From the IMG/VR virus record IMGVR_UViG_3300042473_001540, positions 1 to 64,000 of that record: DNA of 64,000 nucleotides, one strand, 5' to 3'. A program made the position numbers and the translations under genes. Below the pieces are notes generated by a model, which worked only from the letters and a program-made list of their open reading frames with translations, ran no database searches and was not told the origin of the DNA. Positions 3,730 to 62,639 of the stretch are shown here, piece after piece (the first letter of the stretch is position 1; the number at the start of each line of letters is the position of its first letter).

Positions 3730-3780
3730 CATAATCCCCATGTCTTGCTATATAAGAGAATAGCCAAAAGGATAGACCTT
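3726..3780 (+). promoter_or_regulatory. Sigma70 promoter plus leader hairpin motif
   Basis: TTGACA-17-TATATA, then AAAAGGATAGACCTT at 3766-3780. Confidence 0.7.
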
Positions 3781-3808
3781 GCGGCAGATTGAGCAAAGGA
3801 TTTTTGCG

Positions 3809-4879
3809 ATGAACAAAGCTGACCTAGGAATCTTTATCGGAAGGTTTTCTCCTTACCATTCAGGTCACCACCATGTGGTAACTGAAGCACTCAAGCACGC
3901 AGACAATTTGGTGATTTTGGTGGGCAGTGCCCGCAGTCCGCGCAGTTATCGTGTGCCGTTTACCTTTCAAGAACGGCGGGACATGATTGAAGGCAGCCTG
4001 CCTGCCGAGCTGAAAAACAGAGTGCGAGTTCTGCCTCTAGAGGACGCCACCTACAACGACAGCAAGTGGATCCACAATGTGCAGACGCTGGCTGCCCAAG
4101 GGGCGACGCTTTTTGGGCTTGACCCAGCCAAAGCCAAGATCACACTAGTGGGCCACAGCCGAGACAACACCAGCTATTACCTGAAACTGTTTCCTCAATG
4201 GAGCAATGTGGAGGTCAGCAGCTTCCGCGACATCAGCGGTACCAACATTCGCAACAGCTACTTCAGCAACATGGGCCACATGTGGGTGAGAGATGCAGAT
4301 GGCCACCAAGCAGGTGACCTGCCTCAGGATGCAGTGGTGACACCCTATGTGCAGAAGTTTCTCAGCAGTTTCCTTGATACTCCCAACCACAAGCTGATCC
4401 GTGACGAGTATGAGTTTGTGCTGAAGTACAAAAGCAGTTGGGCGGCTGCGCCTTACCCTGTGAATCTAGTGTGCGTAGACGCTGTGGTGATCAAAAGCGG
4501 ACATGTGCTAATGGTGGAACGTGGAGCAATGCCAGGGAAAGGCCAGCTTGCACTTCCTGGTGGATACCTAGATGTAACTGAGCGAGTAGTTGACGGGATG
4601 ATCCGTGAGCTGCGTGAGGAAACTCGGTTGAAAGTCCCAGCTCCGGTGCTTAAAGGCAGCATTGTCAAGAAGGAAGTTTTTGACGATCCTAATCGCAGCA
4701 GCCGAGGTCGAGTGCTCACAGTAGCTTATCTCATTGATCTTGGCACAGGTCCACTTGACACAGTCAAGGGCGGAGATGATGCGGCCTCAGCCAAATGGGT
4801 AGCCCTTAAAGATCTTCGGCCAGAAATCTGTTTTGAGGACCACTATCATTTAATCTCTGTACTAGTCGGGGCAATTTAG
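3809..4879 (+). CDS. nadM: Bifunctional NMN adenylyltransferase / ADP-ribose Nudix hydrolase
   Basis: FIGRFSPYHSGH (HxGH), SGTNIR, Nudix box GG...RELREET. Confidence 0.9.
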   Translation: MNKADLGIFIGRFSPYHSGHHHVVTEALKHADNLVILVGSARSPRSYRVPFTFQERRDMIEGSLPAELKNRVRVLPLEDATYNDSKWIHNVQTLAAQGATLFGLDPAKAKITLVGHSRDNTSYYLKLFPQWSNVEVSSFRDISGTNIRNSYFSNMGHMWVRDADGHQAGDLPQDAVVTPYVQKFLSSFLDTPNHKLIRDEYEFVLKYKSSWAAAPYPVNLVCVDAVVIKSGHVLMVERGAMPGKGQLALPGGYLDVTERVVDGMIRELREETRLKVPAPVLKGSIVKKEVFDDPNRSSRGRVLTVAYLIDLGTGPLDTVKGGDDAASAKWVALKDLRPEICFEDHYHLISVLVGAI

Positions 4880-4889
4880 GAAAAAGGTA

Positions 4890-5087
4890 ATGATGACGCG
4901 CATCAAGATTGAAACTTGCACCACCATCAGTAATGTGGACCCCAGCAGTCTCGAGCAGTTGAAACAAACTCTCCGTATCTCACAGAAGCAGGGGTTGATT
5001 AGGCCCACAGGTGATCCCAGTATTGATGCGCCCATCACGGAACAAGAAAATGACAAAGAAAACAAAAAAGAAGATCCCAACAATTGA
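4890..5087 (+). CDS. Hypothetical protein
   Basis: ORF with RBS in operon. Confidence 0.45.
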   Translation: MMTRIKIETCTTISNVDPSSLEQLKQTLRISQKQGLIRPTGDPSIDAPITEQENDKENKKEDPNN

Positions 5088-5199
5088 AGCCGCTCTAGCG
5101 GAATGTTTGGTGCAACAGGCTGGCGAGCTGTGGCAACCTGCTGAGCCAAGCCTGTTGGAACAACTGCTCCGTTACCGCGAAAGGACAGACAGTGAGTGA
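5050..5199 (+). CDS. Hypothetical protein
   Basis: Short ORF MTKKTKKK... overlapping neighbours. Confidence 0.4.
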   Translation: MTKKTKKKIPTIEAALAECLVQQAGELWQPAEPSLLEQLLRYRERTDSE

Positions 5200-5512
5200 C
5201 ACTCCCCAGTTCACAGAAGTTGATCTCAGCAAAACCACACGGCATGGCAGTGATGAGCTAACAGTGGGACCAACCTATATCTGCTTGATTCACGGCAGCT
5301 ATTTCATAGGCACATTCGGCAAGGTATGGTTTGGCTTGAACTTCAATGGTTGGCATGGCTGCGGCTTGCAATACGATCCACCGGGCACTAACTCTAGCCG
5401 TTGGCAGCGGGTGTGGCGGTTTGACAATGCAGAACTCATCAAACAAACTGAATCAGTTGTTGATGCATTGTTGAAAGGCACACCTAATGGGACACTACGA
5501 CGAACAACGTGA
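5192..5512 (+). CDS. Hypothetical protein
   Basis: ORF with AGGA RBS, coupled to neighbours. Confidence 0.6.
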   Translation: MSDTPQFTEVDLSKTTRHGSDELTVGPTYICLIHGSYFIGTFGKVWFGLNFNGWHGCGLQYDPPGTNSSRWQRVWRFDNAELIKQTESVVDALLKGTPNGTLRRTT

Positions 5513-5714
5513 TTTTGACGACTATCAGCAAAGTCTACGGCGAGATAAACAGTTGATTGAAGATGTGAAAAGTGGCAAATTTGGGGTGCTCTTGCATGCT
5601 GCTGACATTGCCAACAGCAATACAGTGATGGTGAACTGTGGCACATTTGCACGCATGATCAGCATCATCTCACGACTTGACCCGAAAACCTACACATACC
5701 CCTGGGAACGATAA
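5487..5714 (+). CDS. Hypothetical protein
   Basis: ORF in operon. Confidence 0.55.
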   Translation: MGHYDEQRDFDDYQQSLRRDKQLIEDVKSGKFGVLLHAADIANSNTVMVNCGTFARMISIISRLDPKTYTYPWER

Positions 5715-5724
5715 GGAAATTTCA

Positions 5725-6282
5725 ATGGTTATGACTGCACGAGCCTACCGGCATTTACGCGATCTCATCTCGGAAAAAAGTTTGATTCAAGATCAAAACT
5801 TCACTCTCAGCAGTGGAGCAGCCAGCAACTACTTCTTCAACATGAAGATCTCCATGTTGGATCCCATGGGCAGCAATCTCATTGCTGATGCTATGCTGGA
5901 TATTCTCGATACATTGGATTTTGACAGCGTAGGAGGGATGGCTGTGGGCAGCGTTCCGTTGGTTACCAGCATTGCCACCAAAAGCTACCTACGCAGTCGC
6001 CATTATCCAGCTTTCTTTGTGCGAAAAGAAGTGAAAGATCACGGCGTGCAAACAAAGATTGATGGCCACTGCACTCCGGGTAGCCGAGTGGTGCTGGTGG
6101 AAGATGTGACTACTACTGGAGGCAGCATCATGCGGGCTGTTGAGGCTGTGCGGGAGATTGGTTGCCAAGTGGACACAGTGCTCACAGTCGTTGACCGACT
6201 GGAAGGTGCGCGAGAGAATCTATCAGCAGAAAAGATTCGCTTGATCCCCCTCTACACACGAGTTGATTTTGAGGATTCATAA
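5725..6282 (+). CDS. pyrE: Orotate phosphoribosyltransferase
   Basis: FTLSSG, RKEVKDHG, PRPP motif VLVEDVTTTGGS. Confidence 0.9.
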   Translation: MVMTARAYRHLRDLISEKSLIQDQNFTLSSGAASNYFFNMKISMLDPMGSNLIADAMLDILDTLDFDSVGGMAVGSVPLVTSIATKSYLRSRHYPAFFVRKEVKDHGVQTKIDGHCTPGSRVVLVEDVTTTGGSIMRAVEAVREIGCQVDTVLTVVDRLEGARENLSAEKIRLIPLYTRVDFEDS

Positions 6283-6285
6283 ATT

Positions 6286-7017
6286 ATGATTATAATTCCT
6301 GACTCTCCCATTGCAGTTACACATCTAAAAAGGCCTATTATTCTCCCAGGAACTCCTTTACCAGATTATGTGGTGGAGAAAATACTCGCAAGTGAACAAG
6401 TTATTGACGATGATGACTCCTCCTTTGAAACAATGTTTTCTGGGGCAAAACCAATTGATTCGTCCGGCTTTACTGGGGCAGTGACTCAGTGGGTTGAAGG
6501 AGAACTTGGAAGTTTAGGGTATCCTATAAATCACAGCAGAGGGATTGACGTACCGCCCTACAGTATCGAGATCAGAACTCGCAGAAAACACGCTACAGCT
6601 CCACAAACTTTTGGGTCTCTCAAACTATCAGATATAATTCAAAACTCATGGCTTACATCTGATATCAAAACAAAGTGTCAACTCCACTATCAAGTGATGT
6701 GGGATGCGCAACACATGGTTGTTTGTGACGATCAAATCGTGGATTTCCGACATCCTTGGAGACAAGAGGCGTTACAAAAAGCTTTTGATAATGCTAGGGA
6801 TGAGCTGATTGCATACTATTCTAGGCCCAATATTACAGTGCCTTTGAAATTCACTTCGACTGCTGGCGGAATTTATCTTGAAAGAACTTCAAGGAAGAAC
6901 AGCAAAAAAAGCTGGTTCTCAGCATTTTACCAGTTTCGAGTACGAAACAATTTGATGGAAAAATGGCATATAGCGGGCAGGAAAAACTCATACGATGAGC
7001 TGTTTTCAAAAATTTAA
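6286..7017 (+). CDS. Hypothetical protein, possible PD-(D/E)xK-like nuclease
   Basis: 243-aa ORF with AT-richer codon use; GID...IEIRTR weakly nuclease-like. Confidence 0.45.
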   Translation: MIIIPDSPIAVTHLKRPIILPGTPLPDYVVEKILASEQVIDDDDSSFETMFSGAKPIDSSGFTGAVTQWVEGELGSLGYPINHSRGIDVPPYSIEIRTRRKHATAPQTFGSLKLSDIIQNSWLTSDIKTKCQLHYQVMWDAQHMVVCDDQIVDFRHPWRQEALQKAFDNARDELIAYYSRPNITVPLKFTSTAGGIYLERTSRKNSKKSWFSAFYQFRVRNNLMEKWHIAGRKNSYDELFSKI

Positions 7018-7020
7018 AAG

Positions 7021-7080
7021 TTGACGTAATTGGGCATCTAGCCTATAAATATGACACAGGAAAAGGATAGACCTTTTCCT
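7021..7080 (+). promoter_or_regulatory. Sigma70/late promoter plus leader hairpin motif
   Basis: TTGACG-17-TATAAATA, then AGGAAAAGG-ATAGA-CCTTTTCCT. Confidence 0.7.
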
Positions 7081-7107
7081 TCACATACTGAACAAGGGAG
7101 ACTTGTT

Positions 7108-8517
7108 ATGTTCAATTACGATAGCGTCATTCTTGACGTCGACAGCTACAAATTCAGCCATCCGTGGCAACTTCCCCCAAACACCACACACATTCACAGC
7201 TACGTAGAAAGTCGCGGCGGACGCTTCCCTCGCACACTGTTTTACGGGCTCCAAATGTGGCTCAAGCGTCGGCTGGTGACTCCAGTGACCATGAGCGACG
7301 TGGACGAGGCTGCTGGATTGGCAGCCGCACACATGGTGCCTTTCCATCGGGAAGGCTGGGAATACATTGTGCGTGAGCACCAGGGCCGGTTGCCAGTAGA
7401 GATTCGAGCAGTGCCCGAAGGCATGGTGATCCCCACTCACAACGTGCTAGCCACTGTGGTGAACACCGATCCCAATGTGCCCTGGCTCACTAGCTTCCTA
7501 GAGACAGCTCTACTCCGTGCTGTTTGGTACCCCACCACAGTGGCCACACTCAGCTGGCATGCCAAGCAGACCATTCGAGCTGCACTGGGGAAGAGCAGCG
7601 ACAACCCCGAAGGCGAGCTTCTGTTTCGACTGCACGACTTTGGCGCTCGTGGCGTCAGCAGCGATGAAAGCGCTCAGCTGGGTGGCAGTGCTCACCTAGT
7701 GAACTTCCGAGGCACCGACACTGTTGCAGCCCTCCTTGCAGCCCGACGCTACTACACCGAGGCCATGGCAGGGTTTAGCATTCCGGCAGCAGAGCACAGC
7801 ACCATCACCAGTTGGGGTCGCGATGGCGAAGCTGAGGCCTATGGCAACATGCTCAAGCAGTTTGCCCGGCCAGGCAGCATCCTTGCAGTGGTGAGCGACA
7901 GCTACGACATCATGAACGCGGTCAACCACATCTGGGGCGAAACACTGCGAGACCGTGTGCTAGACAGTGGGGCCACCCTTGTGATTCGTCCCGACAGCGG
8001 TGATCCAGTTGTGGTGCCAGTTGATGTGGTTGAGGCACTTGGTGAGCGGTTTGGCTACACCGTCAACAGCAAGGGCTACAAGGTGCTGAACAAGAGTGTG
8101 CGTGTGATCCAGGGCGATGGCATGAACATTGACAGCATCAAAACCCTGTATGACAACCTCACAGCACGCGGCTGGAGTGCAGAAAACGTGGCTGTGGGCA
8201 TGGGCGGCCAACTCTTGCAAGGTATTACTCGCGACACCAATCGATTTGCGATGAAAGCTTCAGCTGCCTGTATTGATGGGGAATGGCGCGAGGTATATAA
8301 GGATCCTATTACAGACAAAGGAAAAACATCCAAGAAAGGTAAAGTTACCCTTTGGCAGTCAGGTAACCAATTTCAAACAAGCGTTAACACTCCTCTACGC
8401 GGTCTTGAGAATGGTGTGGTGTGGACCGACGTTCTGCAGACAGTCTACCGGAATGGACGCCTTCTCATTGATCAATCATTCCAGGACATTAGAGATCGAT
8501 CTGAGAAAGTCTTTTAA
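7108..8517 (+). CDS. nadV: Nicotinamide phosphoribosyltransferase (NAMPT)
   Basis: DSYKFSH, LHDFGARG, SIPAAEHS, VSDSYD, IRPDSGDP, IQGDG motifs. Confidence 0.95.
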   Translation: MFNYDSVILDVDSYKFSHPWQLPPNTTHIHSYVESRGGRFPRTLFYGLQMWLKRRLVTPVTMSDVDEAAGLAAAHMVPFHREGWEYIVREHQGRLPVEIRAVPEGMVIPTHNVLATVVNTDPNVPWLTSFLETALLRAVWYPTTVATLSWHAKQTIRAALGKSSDNPEGELLFRLHDFGARGVSSDESAQLGGSAHLVNFRGTDTVAALLAARRYYTEAMAGFSIPAAEHSTITSWGRDGEAEAYGNMLKQFARPGSILAVVSDSYDIMNAVNHIWGETLRDRVLDSGATLVIRPDSGDPVVVPVDVVEALGERFGYTVNSKGYKVLNKSVRVIQGDGMNIDSIKTLYDNLTARGWSAENVAVGMGGQLLQGITRDTNRFAMKASAACIDGEWREVYKDPITDKGKTSKKGKVTLWQSGNQFQTSVNTPLRGLENGVVWTDVLQTVYRNGRLLIDQSFQDIRDRSEKVF

Positions 8518-9611
8518 TAAGACTGTCTCGTCATCGATAACAAGATACACGTCGTAGCCAGCTCTTTGCGCAGCAAAGAGCTTGGCTATATTTTGTTCTA
8601 AGAATGAATTTTTGGGACCAAACAATGTGTATTTTGACTTGACCTCAAAGATTTTGTGTTCAATCCGGAAATCTGCAAAAAAGGTTTTTTCCTTACCGTG
8701 AAACGTGTATTTGATCATTGGTCCTCTTGTGACATTCTCTATGATTCCTACAGCTTTTGCCCGTTCCAAAAAACGCCGTTCATTTGAGTATTGCCAAAAT
8801 ATGCCTTCTATGAAGCCTGAATTTTTAGAGTTGGATTTCCAGTGTGCTCGCTCAAACCCATTTAAGCCAAGTTCATCAATGTTCTGGGATTTGGTTTCTA
8901 CCATAATACTGGCACGTCGCATAGCCTCTGTTTCACCGGTGGCTGGATTAATTACAGTATTCATAGATTTCTGATTTTTTTCGCTTATCTTTGTGATCCA
9001 TTTTTGTCCTTCTTCTGATTTAAGCCATTGTTGGTATTTTTTAGCTGTTAGCTTATGGACATTTAATCCAGTATCGTTGTCAATTTTATTTCTTTTGATG
9101 TTGGCTACTTTTTCAGCATTTCTTTGGTGAGCGTTATTGCCATAGACATCAATATCAGATGCTTTTGTTTTGGCTGCTTTCTGTGATGCAAGAGTCCCCA
9201 AAGTAACTCCTGGAGCTACCTCAATAAATTTTGACTTTCTGATTTTCTGTCCGGCTTGTATCCTTATATGTTCACAATTGGCACTGTTGCGATTACAACA
9301 ATATTTGCTGTTACGGAATTTCCATTTGGCTGTTTTGTTGCACCCGTAATCACATAAATGATCACCATCATACTCAATGGGTTGAATTTTCTTTTTTTGA
9401 GGCTTTCCTTTTGTAGAACAAGCGGGACATTTTGCTGGATTTTGATGACATAGGTGTTTGCCATCCTTAGTTGTATATGTAGCAGGCCCCCCGCATCGGT
9501 GGCAATTCATATTTTATTCTCCTTTTGGTTTATTTATACACTTGAAGGGCTTCACCTATTCTTACTGCTATATAAGTGTCCGTCTTTTCTGCATGACCTA
9601 CCATCAGTATA
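8221..9611. mobile_element. Homing-endonuclease element carrying a replacement NAMPT 3' end (left boundary approximate)
   Basis: Codon style shifts near 8221; displaced original 3' end resumes at 9612. Confidence 0.7.
8476..9510 (-). CDS. Putative free-standing homing endonuclease
   Basis: Cys-rich zinc-binding N-terminus (CHRCG, CDYGC); FADFRIEHKIFEVKS PD-(D/E)xK-like core; TATAAATA (9531-9538, minus strand) and AGGAG RBS. Confidence 0.7.
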   Translation of the reverse strand: MNCHRCGGPATYTTKDGKHLCHQNPAKCPACSTKGKPQKKKIQPIEYDGDHLCDYGCNKTAKWKFRNSKYCCNRNSANCEHIRIQAGQKIRKSKFIEVAPGVTLGTLASQKAAKTKASDIDVYGNNAHQRNAEKVANIKRNKIDNDTGLNVHKLTAKKYQQWLKSEEGQKWITKISEKNQKSMNTVINPATGETEAMRRASIMVETKSQNIDELGLNGFERAHWKSNSKNSGFIEGIFWQYSNERRFLERAKAVGIIENVTRGPMIKYTFHGKEKTFFADFRIEHKIFEVKSKYTLFGPKNSFLEQNIAKLFAAQRAGYDVYLVIDDETVLLKDFLRSISNVLE

Positions 9612-9884
9612 GACACACAGAAGTTTGCAATGAAAGCCTCTGCTGCCAAGATCAATGGTGAGTGGCAGGATGTCTACAAAGACCCTGTGACCGACAAGGG
9701 CAAGACCAGCAAGCGTGGCCGACTGATCCTCACTCGGGAACGTGGCAAGTGGGAAACACTGCCTGTCAACAGTGGATTTGATTGGGCCAACATGCTCCTG
9801 CCAGTCTATCGAAATGGAGAGCTGCTGCGGGACTGGACCTTCCAGGAGGTTCGAGCCAACAGTGACAAGGCTGCACTAGATTAA
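9612..9884 (+). pseudogene. Displaced original 3' end of nadV
   Basis: DTQKFAMKASAAKINGEWQDVYKDPVTDKGKTSK parallels DTNRFAMKASAACIDGEWREVYKDPITDKGKTSK. Confidence 0.85.
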
Positions 9885-9900
9885 GCCGAACGATTGGGAC

Positions 9901-9930
9901 AAAGAGGGGCATTTTTGCCCCTCTTTTCTG
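9901..9930 (+). terminator. Intrinsic terminator
   Basis: AAAGAGGGGCA-TTTT-TGCCCCTCTTT stem followed by T-rich tail. Confidence 0.75.
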
Positions 9931-10008
9931 TTCTGCTTAACACCAAAAGATTTGTCAAAAAAGTGCAAACTATGTTGAAACCCACATAAACTACAACTAT
10001 ATAGTTAT

Positions 10009-10536
10009 ATGAGCGATTTAAAAACACTTACTTGGGCAAATCACAAGCTTGCCGAAAGTACTCCTTTGATGGCTGCTATGCTTTCTGGAGATATAACACC
10101 TGAATGCTACTCTGATCTAGTGTACAGCAAACACTTGTTGTATTCTGTTATTGAAAGCAGACTTGCTTTTGAGTGTGCTGACTTGCCTCGAGCAGGCTGT
10201 GCGTTCCAGGACTGGAAAGAGATGGGGTCCCACAGTCCCACTTTACCTGCCAGTTTTTTTGAATTTCACGAGAGACTGGAAACTGTGTCTGAAAGCCAAT
10301 TGTGGGCGCATGTGTATGTGCACTACCTTGCCCCGCTCTATGGTGGTCAAATCTTGAAGAAGATTTTGAGCCCTCGTTTTCCGGTAAACATGCTGAGTTT
10401 TGAAACACCCAAAGCAGCTATTGCTGAGATTCGCTACAAAACACATGCTGGTTTGGCTGAAGAGGCCAATCTCAGCTTTGAGATGACAACAAGGTACTAT
10501 GACGAACTTCATCAATCTCATCAACCAAACGGCTGA
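10009..10536 (+). CDS. Heme oxygenase
   Basis: LKTLTWANHKLAE (heme-ligand His), AHVYVHYLAPLYGGQIL. Confidence 0.85.
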   Translation: MSDLKTLTWANHKLAESTPLMAAMLSGDITPECYSDLVYSKHLLYSVIESRLAFECADLPRAGCAFQDWKEMGSHSPTLPASFFEFHERLETVSESQLWAHVYVHYLAPLYGGQILKKILSPRFPVNMLSFETPKAAIAEIRYKTHAGLAEEANLSFEMTTRYYDELHQSHQPNG

Positions 10537-11125
10537 TAAATTTGAGCAGCTGATCCAAAACAACACCACTCTCTTGACGGAGATACCAACAGAGGATTTT
10601 GGTTGGACCAATAACCGATGGTATAGCCAACAGTTTCGGCTTGCTCATGTGGAAAGATTTCAGCAACCAAAATTCAGTGTGTTGCACACTGTGATCTTTC
10701 CTCACCTGACTGATCCCAGCCCTATTTTTGGGTTTGATATCATTGCCAGTGACACCAAGGCCACAGGTTTGTTTTTTGATTTCAGTCCCACTGTTGAAAG
10801 TTATGGAATCATATCTAGTCATCTATGGAGTGAGCCACGTGAAAGACCTGAATGGGGAACAATTTTCAGCGAGCATTGGATCGCTTGCAGACCCACATAT
10901 ACGGAAGCTGAAACCATCAGCACATTGGCATGCACACTGTTGGAACAATATCTATCTCAGTTGGGAACAAAAACCACAACAGATGTACCTATGGTCATAA
11001 AGAAGCAAAATCAATACAGTTTGAACCAAAGACAAAACACTCATACTACTAGAGTTCTCATGAAGATACTGGGAGAAGAGCGTGGCCAGTATTTTGTGGA
11101 AAATATTTTATTCCCAACCATATGA
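10499..11125 (+). CDS. Ferredoxin-dependent bilin reductase (PcyA/PcyX-like)
   Basis: VLHTVIFP, PIFGFDII, FDFSP, RERPEWGTIFS, QRQNTHT; overlaps heme oxygenase. Confidence 0.85.
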   Translation: MTNFINLINQTADKFEQLIQNNTTLLTEIPTEDFGWTNNRWYSQQFRLAHVERFQQPKFSVLHTVIFPHLTDPSPIFGFDIIASDTKATGLFFDFSPTVESYGIISSHLWSEPRERPEWGTIFSEHWIACRPTYTEAETISTLACTLLEQYLSQLGTKTTTDVPMVIKKQNQYSLNQRQNTHTTRVLMKILGEERGQYFVENILFPTI

Positions 11126-14472: not shown

Positions 14473-18564
<4,092 letters not shown>

Positions 18565-32316: not shown

Positions 32317-32922
32317 TTACCATCTTGCATTATCCTCAAATCCAGCATCTTCTAGTTCTTTTTGACAATCAAACATGGCACGTTTGCCTTGTCCTGCGTA
32401 TTTGTTCAAGATTGTTTCAACAGTCGTGTGATTCATTGCTGACCGCAACGAGATACTTTTGGCTGCCAAACAACGGAGCAGTGGAAGAGTAGGCGTGTAA
32501 GGTATAGCCAAGTAATTGAGCTCTGAAGGCATACCTTGGAGTGAGGTTAATGGGTTGAGGTGACAACTAAAAAGATCACCAACACTGCTGGGAGCACCTT
32601 CCAGTGAAGTCAGTTGGTTGTTGAAGCATACGAAACTTCCAACCACATTCTTGGGTGCAGCTTTAAGTGAAATAAGTTGGTTACTTGAGCCTAAGAAACT
32701 TCCACCAACACTCTCTGGCGCCCCGTCCAGTGTGGTTAGTTGGTTGTAATCGCACTGGAAGTGTCCAAGAACACTCTTGAAACGCACAGGGAACTGGGGT
32801 AATTGTCTTTTAAGTATAACATTACCCTGGCAAGTGATCAACCCCTCAGGATCTATTGTGACTTGGCCTGTTGTTTTGAAATTAGCTTTCAACAAAGCCA
32901 TTACTTCTTTTTTGTCTACCAT
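32317..32922 (-). CDS. LRR-like cassette protein 9
   Basis: LRR-like repeats plus conserved C-terminal block. Confidence 0.85.
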   Translation of the reverse strand: MVDKKEVMALLKANFKTTGQVTIDPEGLITCQGNVILKRQLPQFPVRFKSVLGHFQCDYNQLTTLDGAPESVGGSFLGSSNQLISLKAAPKNVVGSFVCFNNQLTSLEGAPSSVGDLFSCHLNPLTSLQGMPSELNYLAIPYTPTLPLLRCLAAKSISLRSAMNHTTVETILNKYAGQGKRAMFDCQKELEDAGFEDNARW

Positions 32923-33668
32923 CTTGCATTCCCTTCAAATCCAGCATCTTCCAGTTCTTTTTGGCAGTCAAACATGGCACGTTTGCCTTGACCCATATAC
33001 TTTTGCAGAATAGCCCGCACCTCGTGTGGCCATCCCATACCCGACCACAGTTTTTTAGCATTTAAACAACGCAAGAGCGGCAGAGTGGGGCTGTAGTCAA
33101 TCCATAAAACCCTTACTTCAGTAGGCATTCCTTCAAGTGACTCTAGCTGATTACCCCATGCTCTCAACTCGCCAGTGATGGTTTTTGGTGCACCGTGTAG
33201 TGAGACTAGTTTGTTTTCCATGCAAAACAAATCATGCACTTTCTCAGGAACATGTTCCAGTGATGAGAGTTGATTTGTCATACAAGAGAAATTGGCACCA
33301 ACTGATTTGGGACAGTGTTCAAGGCTTTCTATGTTGTTATTATCGCATTTGAAATCTCCGCCCACATGTTGAGGCGAACCCAACAAACTGGTGAGTTGGT
33401 TGTGGCCACACTTGAAATCTCTACCTACCCAAGAGGGTGCGCCTTCTAGACTCACCAGATCGGTATGCTGTACAGCAAAATCGTAGCGTATTTTTCCAAA
33501 CCTTACCCGCAAGGTTTTTATACCTGGCTTACCATCAAGGTAAGATTTCTCCTTGCTCTTGACACTGCCTGTGCAGGATATCAATCCTGTGTTGGGATCA
33601 ACAGAGAGTTTACCTGTGTGAGAGTAATATTTGTCAAAAGTTTTTTTGATCCCGGCTAGATCTACCAT
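32916..33668 (-). CDS. LRR-like cassette protein 8
   Basis: Same; 7-nt ATGGTAG start/stop overlap. Confidence 0.85.
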   Translation of the reverse strand: MVDLAGIKKTFDKYYSHTGKLSVDPNTGLISCTGSVKSKEKSYLDGKPGIKTLRVRFGKIRYDFAVQHTDLVSLEGAPSWVGRDFKCGHNQLTSLLGSPQHVGGDFKCDNNNIESLEHCPKSVGANFSCMTNQLSSLEHVPEKVHDLFCMENKLVSLHGAPKTITGELRAWGNQLESLEGMPTEVRVLWIDYSPTLPLLRCLNAKKLWSGMGWPHEVRAILQKYMGQGKRAMFDCQKELEDAGFEGNARW

Positions 33669-34279
33669 CGTGCATTTCCTTCAAATCCAGAGTCTTCCAA
33701 ATCTTTTTGGCAGTCAAACATGGCAGCTTTGCCTTGACCTGCATATTTGTTCATGATTTCTTGAACCTTCTGGGGTGGCTCCGATTCATCAACCCTATGC
33801 ATGAATACAATTTTTTTGGCAACCAATGCACGTAGCAAAGGCAAAGTGGGCGAATATTGTAACACTAGTCGCCCTAAACCTTCTTGCGGTATGCCTTCAA
33901 GACTTTCAAGTGGATTGCCCACACAACTCAAAGATCCAAGAACTTTTTTGGGTGCACCTTGCAAGCTCTTGAGCTGGTTGAACCCACATAAGTAGTGTTC
34001 GCCAACAGCATCAGGACCGCCTTCAAGAGTTTGTAAATTGTTCTCAGTACAACGAAATTCATTGTAGACATATTTGGGAGATCCTTGAAGGCTTGTGAGC
34101 CCCATGCCCCCCACATCAAATCCTTCCACTTCATAAAAGCCAACTGGCAACTTCTTAACATGCAACATAAGCGTTACGTAACCTTTTGTGCTTATTGTTC
34201 CATCAGAATTGATTACAATGCTTTCATTACATTGAAAATAATCATCAAAAGTTTTTTTGATGTTATCAACGTCTACCAT
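33662..34279 (-). CDS. LRR-like cassette protein 7
   Basis: Same. Confidence 0.85.
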   Translation of the reverse strand: MVDVDNIKKTFDDYFQCNESIVINSDGTISTKGYVTLMLHVKKLPVGFYEVEGFDVGGMGLTSLQGSPKYVYNEFRCTENNLQTLEGGPDAVGEHYLCGFNQLKSLQGAPKKVLGSLSCVGNPLESLEGIPQEGLGRLVLQYSPTLPLLRALVAKKIVFMHRVDESEPPQKVQEIMNKYAGQGKAAMFDCQKDLEDSGFEGNARW

Positions 34280-34911
34280 TTTGCATGATCCTCAAATCCA
34301 GCGTCTTCCAAATCTTTTTGGCAATCAAACATGGCACGTTTGCCTTGGCCAGCATATTTGTTCAAAATTGTCTGCACTTTTCCCTTCTCCACAGTGTGAG
34401 TGTCGTCAGCAGGCTCTAAAAATATATGCCTTGCTGCCAAGGTACGTAAGAGAGGCAAATGTGGTAGATACGGTAACCAAGCTGCATTTTCCACTTTCAA
34501 CGGAAATCCATCCAAGCTTTTCAACGGATTACCAATGCAATTGAAATTATTGGGTATCTGGACAGGTGCCCCCTTCAAATCAACAAGTTGATTATGGTCA
34601 CAGTAGTAGTTCCAACCTACAATTTCTGGCCCCCCACTAAGGCTTTTGAGCATGTTACGTGAACAGTCAAAACTCACGCCCACTTCAGGGGGACAGCCTT
34701 CCAAGGTTACTAGTGCGTTCTCATCTAACGATAGATTTTCAGTTACAGCTTTGAAGGCAACTGGCAGTTTTTCAAAACGTGTATAGTGGAGATTCAACAA
34801 TTGAATATCGCCATTTACTGTTACCAGTCCATCTGATGAAACTTTTGCACTGTTGTAGTCAAAGCTGAAATGGTCTTTCAATAACTGCAAGATTTCTCGT
34901 TTGTTTACCAT
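34273..34911 (-). CDS. LRR-like cassette protein 6
   Basis: Same. Confidence 0.85.
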   Translation of the reverse strand: MVNKREILQLLKDHFSFDYNSAKVSSDGLVTVNGDIQLLNLHYTRFEKLPVAFKAVTENLSLDENALVTLEGCPPEVGVSFDCSRNMLKSLSGGPEIVGWNYYCDHNQLVDLKGAPVQIPNNFNCIGNPLKSLDGFPLKVENAAWLPYLPHLPLLRTLAARHIFLEPADDTHTVEKGKVQTILNKYAGQGKRAMFDCQKDLEDAGFEDHAKW

Positions 34912-35564
34912 CTGGCGTTGTCCTCAAATCCGGCATCTTCCAATTCTTTTTGACAATCAAACATAACACGTTTTCCTTGCCCCAAATATTTTTCCAAAAT
35001 GTATAACACCTTCCAGGCATCGCTGCCCTCGCTTTGATACGGCCAAAAAATAATCTCTGGTGCCACCAATGTGCGCAACAAAGGCAGCTGAGTATCATAA
35101 GTGATATACAAACTATCTCCAATTTTTTGAGGAAAGCCCTGCAAGCTCTCTAGAGGATTGGCTGAACAATTGAACACACTGGGGATTTCTCTAGGTGCCC
35201 CTTCCAAATCCTTCAATTGATTTTTACTGCAATTATAACTGCCGCCAAATGTGGGTGTTTGTGTCGTGCCTATTGTTTTGGGTCCAAACTTCAAACTTTT
35301 GAGTTCATTATTGTCACACTCAAAATTCTTACCAACAGTTTCTGGACAACCCTCTAGTGTCTTGAGTTGGTTGATGCTGAGCATCATACTGCCTTCAATG
35401 TGAGAAAATTTCACCGGTAGTTCTTGAAAAGAACTGTGAAATTTGTTGTATAACACAACGTCTCCCATGACACTGACTTTGCCAGCTGGATCAACAATGG
35501 GGTCCCCATCTACCATGAAATGTTGAGTTAGCGTGTTCAACACATGCTGTTTGACGTCTACCAT
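34905..35564 (-). CDS. LRR-like cassette protein 5
   Basis: Same. Confidence 0.85.
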   Translation of the reverse strand: MVDVKQHVLNTLTQHFMVDGDPIVDPAGKVSVMGDVVLYNKFHSSFQELPVKFSHIEGSMMLSINQLKTLEGCPETVGKNFECDNNELKSLKFGPKTIGTTQTPTFGGSYNCSKNQLKDLEGAPREIPSVFNCSANPLESLQGFPQKIGDSLYITYDTQLPLLRTLVAPEIIFWPYQSEGSDAWKVLYILEKYLGQGKRVMFDCQKELEDAGFEDNARW

Positions 35565-36163
35565 CTTGCATTTCCTTCAAAGCCCGCATCTTCCAGTTCT
35601 TTTTGGCAATCAAACAGGGCACGTTTGCCTTGTCCTGCGTATTTGTAAAATATTCCTTCAATTGTTAGAAGTTTGCTTTGCATAACATTGTGGGCATACA
35701 GCATTAGGCCCTGTTGGCAGTTCAAAGCTCGAAGCAAGGGCAATTTATTGTGATAATTTATGCTCAAGTGTTGGCCTACTCGTTGGGGAAACCCAGCAAG
35801 ACTCAACACTGGAACCTCTTGTCTAAATCCCACACGACCTGAAACCTCAAGGGGCCCACCTGTCATGTCTTTCAAAGGATTTTTGTTGGCAGTGAATCTG
35901 CCTCCCACAATCTGCGGACAACCTTCAAGACTGGAGAGTCCACATCTGTCTAAAATCAAACTGGCATGGCAAACGCCAAATTTTACAGGCAGTTTTCCAT
36001 TGGGAAACGGTCCTTGTATGGCCAAGAGCACACCATATCCTGGTGTGATCTCCTGCACATTTACTATACCACTATCTTCAATTTGAAAGCGCACCCGGTT
36101 GTCTGCCTCACCATTACGAAAATAAGTGTTCAACATGTGCTGAACTTCTTGTTTGTCTACCAT
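35558..36163 (-). CDS. LRR-like cassette protein 4
   Basis: Same. Confidence 0.85.
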   Translation of the reverse strand: MVDKQEVQHMLNTYFRNGEADNRVRFQIEDSGIVNVQEITPGYGVLLAIQGPFPNGKLPVKFGVCHASLILDRCGLSSLEGCPQIVGGRFTANKNPLKDMTGGPLEVSGRVGFRQEVPVLSLAGFPQRVGQHLSINYHNKLPLLRALNCQQGLMLYAHNVMQSKLLTIEGIFYKYAGQGKRALFDCQKELEDAGFEGNARW

Positions 36164-36756
36164 CTTGCATTTCCTTCAAATCCAGCATCCTCTAGATCTT
36201 TTTGACATTCAAACAGGGCACGCTTGCCCTGTCCTTTGTATTTTTCAATTATTTCTTCAATGGGATTAGTGTTAAAGGATGATGAGCTCAATATTACACC
36301 ATCTTGGCAAGCTAACGTGCGCAGCAGCGGCAACTTGTCATGGTAAGGCAGTTTAGCATAGTCACCCACCCTATCAGGAAAACCATCCAAACTCTCTAAT
36401 AGGTTTTTCTGCATCCCAAGCCAAAACCTACCTGTGACTTCTTTGGGCCCACCCTTGAAATTTTTCAATTGATTGCCAAGTGCAACAAAATTGCCTTGGA
36501 TTACAGGGGGACAACCAACCAAGTCCACGATTTGATTCCGGTCCAATTTTAAGCTGGCTTTGAACAAGCCAAATCTCACAGGCAACTGACCTCCAGGGAA
36601 GGGTTTGTCCTTAATAGTGCGGAGATGGCCGCGACCAGGAGTCAGCTCAAGCACATTAACCAAGCCCTCAGGACCTATGTCAAATTTCACAGCGTCATTT
36701 GGCTCAAAGAAAAAATACTCTGCCAACAGTTCCAAAATTTCCCTTTTGTCTACCAT
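36157..36756 (-). CDS. LRR-like cassette protein 3
   Basis: Same. Confidence 0.85.
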   Translation of the reverse strand: MVDKREILELLAEYFFFEPNDAVKFDIGPEGLVNVLELTPGRGHLRTIKDKPFPGGQLPVRFGLFKASLKLDRNQIVDLVGCPPVIQGNFVALGNQLKNFKGGPKEVTGRFWLGMQKNLLESLDGFPDRVGDYAKLPYHDKLPLLRTLACQDGVILSSSSFNTNPIEEIIEKYKGQGKRALFECQKDLEDAGFEGNARW

Positions 36757-37571
36757 TTGGCGTTCCTTTCAAATCCTGCGTCTTCCAATTCTTTTTGACA
36801 GTCAAACAGGGCTCGTTTGCCCTGGCCTGCGTATTTTTTCAAGATGGTTTCCACTTGAATATACTTGCCCCACAGCACAGGCCAAAAATTGACCTTCTGG
36901 GCTACCAAAAGCCGTAACAAGGGCAAATCGGATTTGTAACTGACTTCAATCAAATCAGGAGTTTGGGAGCCTAACCCCTCAAGATTTTCCAAGGGATTGT
37001 GATCAAAAATAAACTGCTTGGAAATATTCAAAGAGGCACCTTTGAGTGTTGTGAGCTTGTTGTTGGTTGCCCAAAAATATTCCACGGTCTGTGGTGCGTC
37101 TTGAAGATCAGTCAAGAGATTTTTACTGACATCAAACATACCACCTATTTGCAGGGGAGCACCTCGCAAACTCACTAAATTGTTGTTGTATGCAATGTAT
37201 TCTTGTGTAAAGTCTCGTGGACTTCCCAACAAATCTGAGAGTTTATTATTCTGGCAAGAATATTGTCCTTTTACTGTTTTTGGGCCACCAACCAAGCTGA
37301 TCAACTGGTTTTCACTGCAATCAAATGTGTCCAAGACAGTGTGAGGACAGCCTTCAAGTGTTTCCAACTTGTTCCTGTGACAGAGAAAATTGCCTTCCAC
37401 CACTCCAAATCTCACAGGCAATCGAGAGGTCTCTTTGCTCAACAAAATTGATCCATGAGCATCTACAACACCTGTATCATGTATAGTGAAAAGGGTACTT
37501 TCCCAACCAAAGTATTCATTCAGTAACTGACGAACAGTTGTTTTGTCTTGTGGGAATTCCTGGTTTACCAT
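36750..37571 (-). CDS. LRR-like cassette protein 2
   Basis: Same; longest member. Confidence 0.85.
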   Translation of the reverse strand: MVNQEFPQDKTTVRQLLNEYFGWESTLFTIHDTGVVDAHGSILLSKETSRLPVRFGVVEGNFLCHRNKLETLEGCPHTVLDTFDCSENQLISLVGGPKTVKGQYSCQNNKLSDLLGSPRDFTQEYIAYNNNLVSLRGAPLQIGGMFDVSKNLLTDLQDAPQTVEYFWATNNKLTTLKGASLNISKQFIFDHNPLENLEGLGSQTPDLIEVSYKSDLPLLRLLVAQKVNFWPVLWGKYIQVETILKKYAGQGKRALFDCQKELEDAGFERNAKW

Positions 37572-38221
37572 CGTGCATTTTCCTCAAAACCCGCATCTTC
37601 CAATTCTTTTTGGCAGTCAAACAAAGCACGTTTGCCTTTGCCTGCATAACTGTTCAAAATTTTATGTAACTGCTGGAATTTTCCTTCGTTTCCTCGCTTA
37701 TATTGCATAGGCACAATAAGGTCCACATGCAAGGCTCCTAATGTTCTCAACAGTGGTATTGTGGGACTATACGTCAATGTTACCCAAGCAATGCTCTTGG
37801 GCAAGTGGTCAAGTGACTCCAGTGGGTTGTCTTGAATCTCCAGATTGTCAGATACTGTGTCCGGCAAACCTTGTAGAGAAGTCAACTTGTTGCTATTGAG
37901 AAGGATACTGCCACTGACCCAATGCGGAAAACTGGTTAACTTTGATAGCAAGTTGAAGCTGGCGTCGAAATCTCCTTCAATCTCAAATGGGCATCCTTCC
38001 AAGGTTCTTAGATTCTTGTTGTTGCAGGTGAAGGTACCATGCACCTTACTGAAACGCAAAGGTAACTGAGATTGAGGCCGCGTTAGGTGTAAGTCACCAG
38101 CCACAACAATCTTACCATCTTGATCAAACATCCAACCAGCTGGATATAAGGCATTGCTCTCTATCTTGAAGTTCTGGCTCAAGATGGTTTTGGTTTGTTC
38201 ATATTCCACATCACTTACCAT
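37565..38221 (-). CDS. LRR-like cassette protein 1
   Basis: Same. Confidence 0.85.
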   Translation of the reverse strand: MVSDVEYEQTKTILSQNFKIESNALYPAGWMFDQDGKIVVAGDLHLTRPQSQLPLRFSKVHGTFTCNNKNLRTLEGCPFEIEGDFDASFNLLSKLTSFPHWVSGSILLNSNKLTSLQGLPDTVSDNLEIQDNPLESLDHLPKSIAWVTLTYSPTIPLLRTLGALHVDLIVPMQYKRGNEGKFQQLHKILNSYAGKGKRALFDCQKELEDAGFEENARW

Positions 38222-47192: not shown

Positions 47193-47266
47193 GGCCCCAT
47201 AAGACAAAGGTAGTCAGCTGGACTCTAAATCCAGTGGTGTGAGTTCAAATCTCACTGGTGCCACCA
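47193..47266 (+). tRNA. Amber suppressor tRNA (CTA)
   Basis: CTGGA-CTCTAAA-TCCAG; TTCAAAT; ACCA; own TTGACG-17-TATACA promoter. Confidence 0.85.

Positions 47267-51356: not shown

Positions 51357-53024
<1,668 letters not shown>

Positions 53025-60395: not shown

Positions 60396-62638
<2,243 letters not shown>

Positions 62639-62639
<1 letters not shown>

Follow-up and report, generated by a model that had tools for sequence, protein, structure and literature searches.

We examined the nadV region of a 64,000-nucleotide stretch of viral DNA (positions 1 to 64,000 of IMG/VR record IMGVR_UViG_3300042473_001540; hereafter, the window). In this large phage, nadV, the NAD+ salvage gene for nicotinamide phosphoribosyltransferase (NAMPT), is followed by an antisense open reading frame (ORF), a second, stranded nadV 3' end and an intrinsic terminator (Table 1). 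An initial annotation, made from the sequence alone, described this arrangement as an intron-less homing element that swapped the NAMPT C-terminus, and each element it described is present at or very near the positions it gave; its observation is confirmed.

Table 1. Features of the nadV locus in the window (L numbers denote phage loci or lineages; L035 is a relative that lacks the element)
Position	Strand	Feature	Properties
7051-8517	+	Chimeric nadV, 488 aa, intact reading frame	Pfam NAMPT_N and NAPRTase; phrog_448, E 6.6e-154
7051-8208	+	Native nadV body	GC 0.57; GC3 0.63; 91% aa and 84.6% nt identity to L035
8209-8517	+	Imported replacement 3' end, about 97 codons	GC3 0.40 (8221-8514); includes a short inferred co-conversion tract (8209-8232) upstream of the point where the remnant begins; identity to L035 drops from 0.8-0.95 to below 0.7 and then below 0.5
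8221-8253	+	Target-equivalent codons of the resident allele	ITRDTNRFAMK; differs from the RDTQKFAMK of naive genes and remnants; presumed resistant site
8476-9510	-	Free-standing predicted nuclease gene, 344 aa	GC3 0.35; two N-terminal Cys-rich modules, a helical middle, a C-terminal PD-(D/E)xK domain (about residues 211-344)
8476-8517	.	Tail-to-tail antisense overlap of the ORF with the new nadV end	42 nt; 42-45 nt in 6 of 8 loci, 90 nt in L002, 6 nt in L010
9511-9611	-	Upstream region of the ORF	AAGGAG at 9519-9524; TATAAATA at 9531-9538, 21 nt upstream of the ATG
9612-9884	+	Stranded original nadV 3' end (DTQKFAMKAS...LD*)	GC3 0.61; in-frame stop codons upstream, no proper start; first 107 nt 81.3% identical to L035
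9901-9926	+	Intrinsic terminator of the original nadV	11-bp stem, 6 G-C pairs, T-rich tail; 17 nt after the remnant's stop

Chimeric structure of nadV

The switch in composition within nadV is real. GC content in 200-nt windows is 0.53-0.61 from 7100 to 8299 (0.58-0.61 over 7200-7999) and 0.45 thereafter, and the remnant shares the codon style of the body rather than that of the current 3' end. The initial annotation placed the switch at 8221-8233, whereas the break in relatedness to L035 begins at 8209, about 12-24 nt farther upstream. Over the first 107 nt, the current end is only 64.5% identical to L035, so that the stranded piece, not the current end, resembles this relative. However, the C-terminus of L035 resembles the remnant only over these ~107 nt (59% aa overall), and L035 is therefore not the exact ancestor. 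Among the C-termini compared, the nearest relative of the current end is another ORF-linked nadV end, that of L002 (65%).

The stranded piece matches NAPRTase at E 8.5e-5 and the current C-terminus, by tblastn, at E about 2e-23; considered as a direct repeat, 8245-8334 and 9624-9713 are 71% identical. In a tree of C-termini, which is poorly resolved, the new end and the remnant fall on opposite sides of the one moderately supported split (84/97), and the ORF-linked label is clustered, with 3 changes against a shuffled mean of 7.3 (matched by 0 of 500 shuffles). An AU test on the 89-column alignment did not formally reject placement of the new end with L035 (p 0.08, against p 0.42 for the remnant).

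No intron was found by an Rfam search at E up to 1 within 6900-10100, and nadV is one continuous frame of normal length, without an intein. Thus, an intron reading was rejected. We also considered a transposon-type element using a TnsA-like nuclease. TnsA is the best structural match of the ORF product (see below), and its relatives give weak Pfam hits to Tn7_TnsA-like_N. However, the cassette holds a single ORF with no transposase partner, no terminal inverted repeats or target-site duplication were found, the element is found only at one site in one gene, and the apparent duplication is a diverged homologous gene end, not a copy. We regard this possibility as very unlikely.

The antisense ORF and its relatives

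The ORF product itself is below threshold for every Pfam, PHROG and NCBIfam model, gives no hit to PADLOC defence-system models, and has no match in a profile search against PDB sequences, in a tblastn search of 50,697 cultured phage records, or in a scan of 185,579 bacterial and archaeal genomes. Its relatives hit Pfam DUF7487 (PF24308; gathering threshold, 27 bits). The window protein gives no hit to this model even at E up to 10, but its 94% identical relative P0001 scores 33.5 bits, the homologs P0012, P0014 and P0015 score 28-32 bits, and distant relatives score 54-148 bits. The distant DUF7487 relatives sit in classic homing-endonuclease positions: between nrdB and nrdA, between Hint/intein pieces, and after the tail sheath gene.

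The AlphaFold model of the ORF product (pLDDT 86.9) has a C-terminal restriction-endonuclease-like domain. Foldseek on the whole model gave only weak rows (E at least 0.017), all of them nucleases, and structural alignment with VIA-align was needed to see the domain. Residues 197-343 align to TnsA (Z 8.0), Vsr (6.2), Hjc (5.8), VRR-NUC and the I-Bth0305I catalytic domain (5.3; Foldseek probability 0.93), with Z scores of 5.2-8.0 overall. Such scores are in the range that can be non-specific, although all the matches are nucleases of one fold. Residues E244, D280, E289 and K291 are invariant, and D280-x8-E289-x-K291 lies on predicted strands. Thus, the ORF encodes a predicted PD-(D/E)xK nuclease; no LAGLIDADG or GIY-YIG hits were found.

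In seven of eight loci (all but L005), an ATAAATA-like box (exact in six, TAAATA in L008) and a Shine-Dalgarno sequence sit upstream of the ORF at the same spacing. The motif read as a late promoter in the initial annotation is present, but its late character rests only on this conserved box. An inverted repeat between the ORF upstream region and the nadV junction was looked for in the window and not found; it is present only in the L006, L008, L015 and L016 group.

Recurrence across phage lineages

In 11 diverged phage lineages, all of those examined, the ORF or its homologs lie tail-to-tail with nadV: the window and, at 40-65% identity, L002, L005, L006, L008, L010, L015, L016, L135, L136 and L137, whose flanks differ. 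Eight of these, namely the window, L005, L006, L010, L015, L135, L136 and L137, keep a stranded nadV 3' piece. In L006, L010, L015 and L135, the remnant starts at the identical codon, the V of V(D/N)RDTQKFAMK, and in the window, it starts 9 nt later. Comparison of L010 with L042 shows homologous flanks with the right boundary exactly at that codon, whereas the left boundary is at the start of the gene, that is, the whole nadV is replaced. Together with the foreign tract in the window, which begins 24 nt before the remnant-equivalent point, this indicates co-conversion of flanking sequence with variable tract length. Many lineages may descend from one insertion, so these counts are not independent, and only two events, in the window and in L010, are clearly separate.

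None of the 10 ORF-linked functional genes reads RDTQKFAMK. Five of the six remnants that reach the site keep DTQKFAMK, whereas that of L135 reads SDILRFAQK; five of 13 element-free genes found without using the site as a search pattern have the motif. The contrast between linked genes and remnants fits a resident allele that differs at the presumed target. The distribution of the ORF is patchy: only one of 77 further IMG/VR nadV loci screened has it, and L035 lacks it. The initial annotation had named, as grounds for rejection, the occurrence of the 8233-8517 end in relatives without the nuclease; no relative was found to carry a closely similar end of this type without the ORF. In pairwise identities, the ORF of L010 (64% to L006) does not track its nadV (43%), so the ORF and the new end do not always travel together. 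A relic of a nadV tail under the end of the L010 ORF was looked for and not found.

These data bear on two further alternatives. Ordinary illegitimate or homeologous recombination between two phages could have duplicated the nadV 3' end, with the ORF an unrelated moron that played no part in its own insertion. Indeed, phage nadV genes are visibly mosaic, with identity between the window and L035 ranging from 0.65 to 0.97 along the body, and the spacers between the ORF and the remnant differ in length and sequence among loci. We consider this unlikely, given the recurrence of the three-part layout and of the boundary codon in diverged lineages, the location of the ORF beside nadV in 11 of 11 lineages, the predicted nuclease fold with an intact catalytic motif, and the positions of the wider family. 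Alternatively, the ORF could be a conserved accessory gene of the NAD-salvage module, for example, a regulator or a nuclease acting on host DNA, as might be suggested by the strict tail-to-tail linkage across 40-94% identical homologs and the conserved promoter-like box. This also appears improbable because most phage nadV loci lack the ORF (76 of the 77 additional loci), including the closest relative of the window's gene; because the ORF persists beside a decayed nadV in L137 and is itself frameshifted in L136; because there is no hit to defence-system models; and because co-function does not explain the duplicated and replaced gene end.

A proposed homing cassette with a replacement gene end

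The explanation that we favour, with considerable confidence, is that a free-standing homing endonuclease cassette, spanning about 8209-9611, has invaded nadV. It would consist of the replacement 3' end and, convergent with it, the gene for a modular nuclease with a Cys-rich and helical, putatively DNA-binding part and a C-terminal catalytic domain. In the inferred mechanism, the nuclease cuts nadV alleles that lack the cassette at or near the V(D/N)-RDTQKFAMK codons (in the window, the 8220/8221-equivalent position, about 9 nt before the start of the remnant), and the break is repaired from a cassette-bearing genome. On the left, recombination would occur within the nadV body, with co-conversion tracts of variable length. 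On the right, the broken end itself would be kept, leaving the recipient's own 3' end as a promoter-less remnant in front of the old terminator, which could then serve as the right homology arm for later homing events. The imported end would restore a full-length NadV with different target codons (TNR here instead of TQK), so the resident allele should escape re-cutting. The element does not always keep its target functional, as the decayed nadV beside an intact ORF in L137 shows.

The analysis itself establishes the chimerism, the presence/absence polymorphism, the recurrence of the layout, the shared remnant boundary and the predicted nuclease fold with its motif, whereas nuclease activity and specificity, cleavage and its position near the RDTxxFAMK codons, homing, immunity and late expression are inferred. 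With these qualifications, the interpretation in the initial annotation, including its view that the element carries a replacement gene end, is supported by the comparison with other phages.

A more far-reaching possibility, which we put forward only tentatively, is that DUF7487 proteins are a previously unrecognised family of modular PD-(D/E)xK homing endonucleases, of which the nadV-specific branch travels as a self-contained "cut-and-patch" cassette. The nuclease gene would be physically interlocked, by the conserved antisense overlap, with a portable replacement end for the gene it cuts, and the stranded native end would serve as the right homology arm, so that the cassette could invade nadV in phages that share no flanking synteny. 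In one subclade, an inverted copy of the target's upstream AFGMGG codons beside the nuclease promoter would be an autoregulatory operator, as in I-TevI.

If correct, the favoured reading would carry the C-terminal swap mode of endonuclease-driven gene invasion from fungal mitochondria over to bacteriophages. It gives DUF7487 a concrete, testable function, with a predicted target of about 30-40 bp in a conserved stretch of an enzyme gene, and shows how an auxiliary metabolic gene becomes mosaic between unrelated phages. A modular zinc-module plus PD-(D/E)xK enzyme with a natural target would be a candidate for studying long-target recognition, and the roughly 11 lineages provide natural replicates of intact, frameshifted (L136) and target-decayed (L137) stages of the homing cycle. 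Literature searches found no paper linking nadV with a homing endonuclease and none naming DUF7487, although, given incomplete coverage, this is weak evidence of novelty.

The closest parallel is with the mobile ORF elements of fungal mitochondria, in Allomyces macrogynus atp6 and in Glomus atp6, atp9, cox2 and nad3 (PMC3630166 and its ref. 48). There, an endonuclease ORF inserted in the 3' part of a protein gene brings a foreign in-frame C-terminus that replaces the native one, and the native C*-terminus stays downstream and resembles the closest ORF-less relative more than the inserted copy does; the window has the same order of parts. In contrast, the host here is a bacteriophage, the target is nadV, the predicted nuclease is PD-(D/E)xK (DUF7487) rather than LAGLIDADG or GIY-YIG, and the ORF is antisense and overlapping rather than on the same strand or in phase.

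The free-standing Seg and Mob homing endonucleases of T4-like phages (PMC2988022) resemble the cassette as inferred here: they are encoded next to the gene they cut, spread by break repair with co-conversion of flanking markers, and have resistant resident alleles and, commonly, late-type promoters. However, they are GIY-YIG and HNH enzymes, and the in-gene insertions listed in that review (Aeh1 nrdA, T4 gene 39/60, phage 25 gene 43) split the gene into two polypeptides, whereas nadV is kept whole by a carried replacement end. In HEG islands of ICP1-like and other phages (Barth et al. 2023, PMC10055350), fragments of the neighbouring essential gene lie beside homing endonuclease genes and are proposed to act as recombination substrates, and the endonucleases have "beads-on-a-string" zinc-module DNA-binding regions (DUF723/DUF4379), also seen in the DUF7487 relative L017. 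Those endonucleases are mainly T5orf172 and HNH types, and we found no description there of a defined 3'-end swap with a fixed boundary codon. Finally, the homing endonucleases I-Bth0305I (EDxHD family) and I-Ssp6803I (PD-(D/E)xK) have catalytic domains with a restriction-endonuclease-like or Vsr-like fold, that of I-Bth0305I aligning with the ORF product at 23% identity. These enzymes are encoded in introns, no sequence-level relationship to them was detected in the profile search against PDB sequences, and the motif here is E...D-x8-E-x-K, not EDxHD.

Genomic setting of the nadV locus

The window comprises the last 64 kb (reverse strand) of a 180.7-kb IMG/VR viral contig that is estimated by CheckV to be 44% complete. 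Three other IMG/VR contigs, up to 310 kb, carry the same locus, with 100% identical matches to the open reading frame (ORF) antisense to nadV, the nadV body and both nadV ends. nadV belongs to an NAD+ salvage module that also includes an uncharacterized 243-aa ORF and is followed by a heme-oxygenase-like gene, a bilin-reductase-like gene and a sigma-70 gene. The nadV body (GC 0.57) is much richer in GC than its surroundings (about 0.38-0.46), and its closest relative, L035, is found in a non-syntenic phage, which suggests that nadV is itself horizontally mobile. The heme-oxygenase-like and ferredoxin-dependent bilin-reductase-like genes are auxiliary genes typical of cyanophages. Elsewhere in the window, 18 tRNA genes were identified, including a potential amber suppressor that raises the possibility of TAG recoding, along with a tandem array of paralogous genes with no assigned function and three large ORFs that may encode fibre proteins. 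The coordinates of these features, and of those discussed below, are collected in the following table.

Features of the window and of related loci
Location	Strand	Feature	Observations
3779-8517		NAD+ salvage module	NatV-like gene, phosphoribosyltransferase-like gene, 243-aa ORF, nadV
3779-4879		Cytidylyltransferase-NUDIX (NatV-like) gene	
5677-6282		Phosphoribosyltransferase-like gene	
7051-8517		nadV, 488 aa	NAMPT_N and NAPRTase domains
8221-8514		Resident nadV 3' end, portion used for codon composition	GC3 0.40
8245-8334		Direct repeat with the stranded fragment	71% identical
8476-9510	antisense to nadV	Predicted nuclease ORF, 344 aa	Overlaps the nadV stop by 42 nt; GC3 0.35
8560-8582		Perfect 10-bp hairpin, 3-nt loop	43 nt after the new nadV stop, inside the antisense ORF; T-rich run a few bases further on; not called by the terminator scan
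9612-9884		Stranded nadV 3' fragment, DTQKFAMKAS...	Stop at 9882-9884; in-frame stops just upstream and no proper start; GC3 0.61
9901-9926		Terminator	11-bp stem
10009-11125		Heme-oxygenase-like and ferredoxin-dependent bilin-reductase-like genes	Overlap by 38 nt
14473-18555	-	Large ORF	Long collagen triple-helix repeats
32317-38221	-	Nine consecutive, slightly overlapping ORFs of 199-273 aa	Paralogs (31-52% identical) with leucine-rich-repeat-like NQLTSL motifs
47193-47266		tRNA, anticodon CTA	Called by ARAGORN and labelled tRNA-Pyl
51357-53015	-	Large ORF	Long collagen triple-helix repeats
60402-62639	+	Large ORF	Long collagen triple-helix repeats
L006:4900-5000	ORF sense	Conserved block with inverted copy of AFGMGG codons	13-14 of 16 nt; shuffle p 0.003-0.01 (range for L006, L008 and L016)
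L008:4900-5000	ORF sense	Conserved block with inverted copy of AFGMGG codons	As for L006
L016:3894-3994	ORF sense	Conserved block with inverted copy of AFGMGG codons	As for L006
L015:1391-1491	ORF sense	Conserved block with inverted copy of AFGMGG codons	12 of 16 nt; p 0.12
L137:2600-4760		Intact nuclease ORF beside fragmented nadV	Found on 10 contigs
L136:3095-4091		Nuclease ORF split over two frames	
L135:1-8023		Syntenic relative of the window phage	Sigma-70, bilin reductase, heme oxygenase, nuclease ORF, nadV
L020:2283-6551		Distant DUF7487 nuclease gene	Between two ORFs with Hint/intein-splicing pieces
L017:1945-6130		Distant DUF7487 nuclease gene	Between nrdB and an intein-bearing nrdA

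The chimeric nadV gene and its stranded 3' end

The initial annotation described a switch to AT-richer codons near the 3' end of nadV, an antisense endonuclease gene overlapping the new stop and an older 3' end stranded just before the terminator, and this description proved to be accurate. GC content in 200-nt windows is 0.53-0.61 from 7100 to 8299 (0.58-0.61 over 7200-7999) and 0.45 after that, and GC3 in the nadV body is 0.63, close to that of the downstream fragment but well above that of the resident end and the antisense ORF. The fragment matches NAPRTase (E 8.5e-5) and residues 392-487 of the resident NadV (50.5% aa; E about 2e-23).

A search of IMG/VR with the body alone identified a locus, L035, that has no ORF homolog nearby and whose nadV body is 91% identical at the amino acid level and 84.6% identical at the nucleotide level. 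Sliding identity to L035 is 0.8-0.97 over most of the body, falls to 0.68 across 8191-8310 and is below 0.5 beyond, with the mismatches, base by base, beginning at 8209. Over the first 107 nt after the junction, L035 is 81.3% identical to the stranded fragment but 64.5% to the resident end; the 107 nt before the junction are also 81.3% identical. L035 is not the exact ancestor, however, because beyond the first ~107 nt its C-terminus differs from the remnant as well. Among the C-termini compared, the closest relative of the resident end is the ORF-linked end of locus L002 (65% aa), whereas the closest relatives of the fragment are the element-free genes of L061 (70-72%), L058 (65%) and L035 (59-61%). 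In a C-terminus tree built without the target codons, the two window pieces fall on opposite sides of the only moderately supported deep split (84/97), and the ORF-linked label is clustered, with 3 changes against 7.3 expected, matched by 0 of 500 shuffles. An AU test is only suggestive: placing the resident end with L035 costs 23.2 lnL (p 0.08), whereas placing the remnant there costs 3.6 lnL (p 0.42). Taken together, these observations indicate that the gene is a chimera and that the fragment is its original end.

Several alternative readings of the locus were excluded. No group I or group II intron was found, nadV is of normal length, so there is no intein, there are no terminal inverted repeats or target duplication, and there is no match to defence-system models.

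The predicted nuclease and the recurrence of the layout

The antisense ORF has no significant hit in Pfam, PHROGs, NCBIfam, PADLOC, cultured phage records or PDB sequences. A word search recovered 17 relatives at 44-94% identity, several of which pass the threshold for Pfam DUF7487, an uncharacterized family, and one of which gives a weak TnsA-like hit. The alignment shows two N-terminal Cys-rich modules, a helical middle and a C-terminal block with invariant E244, D280, E289 and K291, that is, D-x8-E-x-K. The AlphaFold model is confident (pLDDT 86.9). All Foldseek matches are weak but correspond to PD-(D/E)xK enzymes, including the catalytic domain of the I-Bth0305I homing endonuclease (probability 0.93), and exhaustive structural alignment places residues 197-343 on TnsA (Z 8.0), Vsr (6.2), Hjc (5.8), I-Bth0305I (5.3) and VRR-NUC (5.2). 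These Z values are moderate, and the assignment as a predicted nuclease rests on the consistency of the fold together with the invariant motif. More distant DUF7487 proteins, 36-45% identical over the catalytic core, are encoded in classic homing-endonuclease positions, namely, between nrdB and an intein-bearing nrdA (L017), between Hint/intein pieces (L020) and directly after a tail sheath gene (L025); L017 also carries DUF723/DUF4379 zinc modules.

Every homolog of the ORF whose context could be read lies tail-to-tail with nadV. These loci, L002, L005, L006, L008, L010, L015, L016, L135, L136 and L137, are located in otherwise different gene neighbourhoods. L135 is a syntenic relative of the window phage; its cassette is 51% identical, and it carries a second homing-endonuclease-like gene with DUF723/DUF4379 zinc modules near the natV-like gene. 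The overlap is 42-45 nt in six loci, where the conserved tail of the ORF, ...SISN(L/V)LE, is encoded antisense to the conserved SFQ(D/E)IRDR of NadV. A stranded nadV 3' piece lies beyond the ORF in the window, L005, L006, L010, L015 and L135, and relics of its tail remain in L136 and L137. In L006, L010, L015 and L135 the remnant begins at the same codon, the V of V(D/N)RDTQKFAMK, whereas it begins 9 nt later in the window and about 45 nt later in L005. L010 is informative in that its flanks and remnant are homologous to the element-free locus L042 (about 69% nt; remnant 84% aa), with the right boundary exactly at that codon, but its whole nadV is a very different allele (about 43% aa), so that the replaced tract runs back to the gene start. 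The window (24-nt tract) and L010 (about 1.1-kb tract) therefore record at least two separate events with a common right boundary.

The distribution of the ORF is patchy: only one of 77 further IMG/VR nadV loci has it, and no relative was found in 185,579 bacterial and archaeal genomes. Relatives carrying the new end without the nuclease would, according to the initial annotation, have refuted its reading, but no close relative of the window's new end was found without the nuclease. The family shows the stages expected of a homing cycle. In most loci the ORF is intact beside an intact nadV, in L136 it is frameshifted, and in L137 it is intact beside a nadV reduced to fragments (body residues 65-156, the overlapping tail and a remnant tail). 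The latter two cases look like decay stages of the element and of its target, and the cassette does not always preserve the target gene.

Putative target, expression signals and comparison with known systems

The putative target lies in a conserved stretch of NadV; in human NAMPT, RDTQKFAMK corresponds to R392...K400, which carry phosphate-binding residues. None of the 10 ORF-linked functional genes reads RDTQKFAMK; they read TNR, DFR, TMKW, DQK (three times), DQKW, DQQ, TFK..Q and TMK. By contrast, five of the six remnants that reach the site keep DTQKFAMK, that of L135 having drifted to SDILRFAQK, and five of 13 element-free genes found with body-only patterns have the exact motif. The pattern DTQKFAMK also retrieved 165 viral stretches. 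This distribution fits a recognition or cleavage site on these codons with a resistant resident allele. Given that the lineages are related and that the evidence comes from sequence comparison alone, both the site and the resistance remain inferences, as does the nuclease activity predicted from the fold, whereas the chimeric gene, its stranded original end and the recurring layout follow directly from the comparisons. With this qualification, the interpretation put forward in the initial annotation, an intron-less homing element that exchanged the NadV C-terminus, is supported.

The octamer TATAAATA lies 21 nt upstream of the ATG of the nuclease ORF, with AAGGAG between them. An ATAAATA-like box (exact in six loci, TAAATA in L008) and a Shine-Dalgarno sequence occur at the same spacing in all loci but L005. 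The octamer occurs 8 times in the window against 1.5 expected, but not consistently upstream of genes. It matches the T4 late-promoter consensus, although late timing in this phage, which encodes its own sigma-70-type factor, remains an inference. In L006, L008, L015 and L016, about 45 conserved nt just upstream of the ATAAATA box contain an inverted copy of the nadV codons AFGMGG, which lie 27-36 nt upstream of the insertion point in the same locus. This copy, which is absent in the window, L002, L005 and L010, could be an autoregulatory operator or a scar of the founding insertion. The new nadV end has no terminator of its own that the scan recognizes, and transcripts presumably run antisense through the ORF to the terminator beyond the fragment; the hairpin downstream of the new stop might attenuate such read-through.

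The architecture is that of the fungal mitochondrial mobile ORFs first described for Allomyces atp6 and later for Glomus atp6, atp9, cox2 and nad3, which have an inserted foreign C-terminus, the endonuclease ORF and a native C*-terminus that resembles the ORF-less relative (PMC3630166). We found no paper on a nadV-targeting endonuclease or on DUF7487, albeit in an incomplete body of literature. In phages, a review of the T4 family lists in-gene insertions that split the host gene, not end swaps (PMC2988022), and Barth et al. noted fragments of cargo genes beside homing endonuclease genes and proposed that they serve as recombination substrates (PMC10055350). The present case differs in three ways, namely, the nuclease family, the antisense interlocked arrangement and the target gene.
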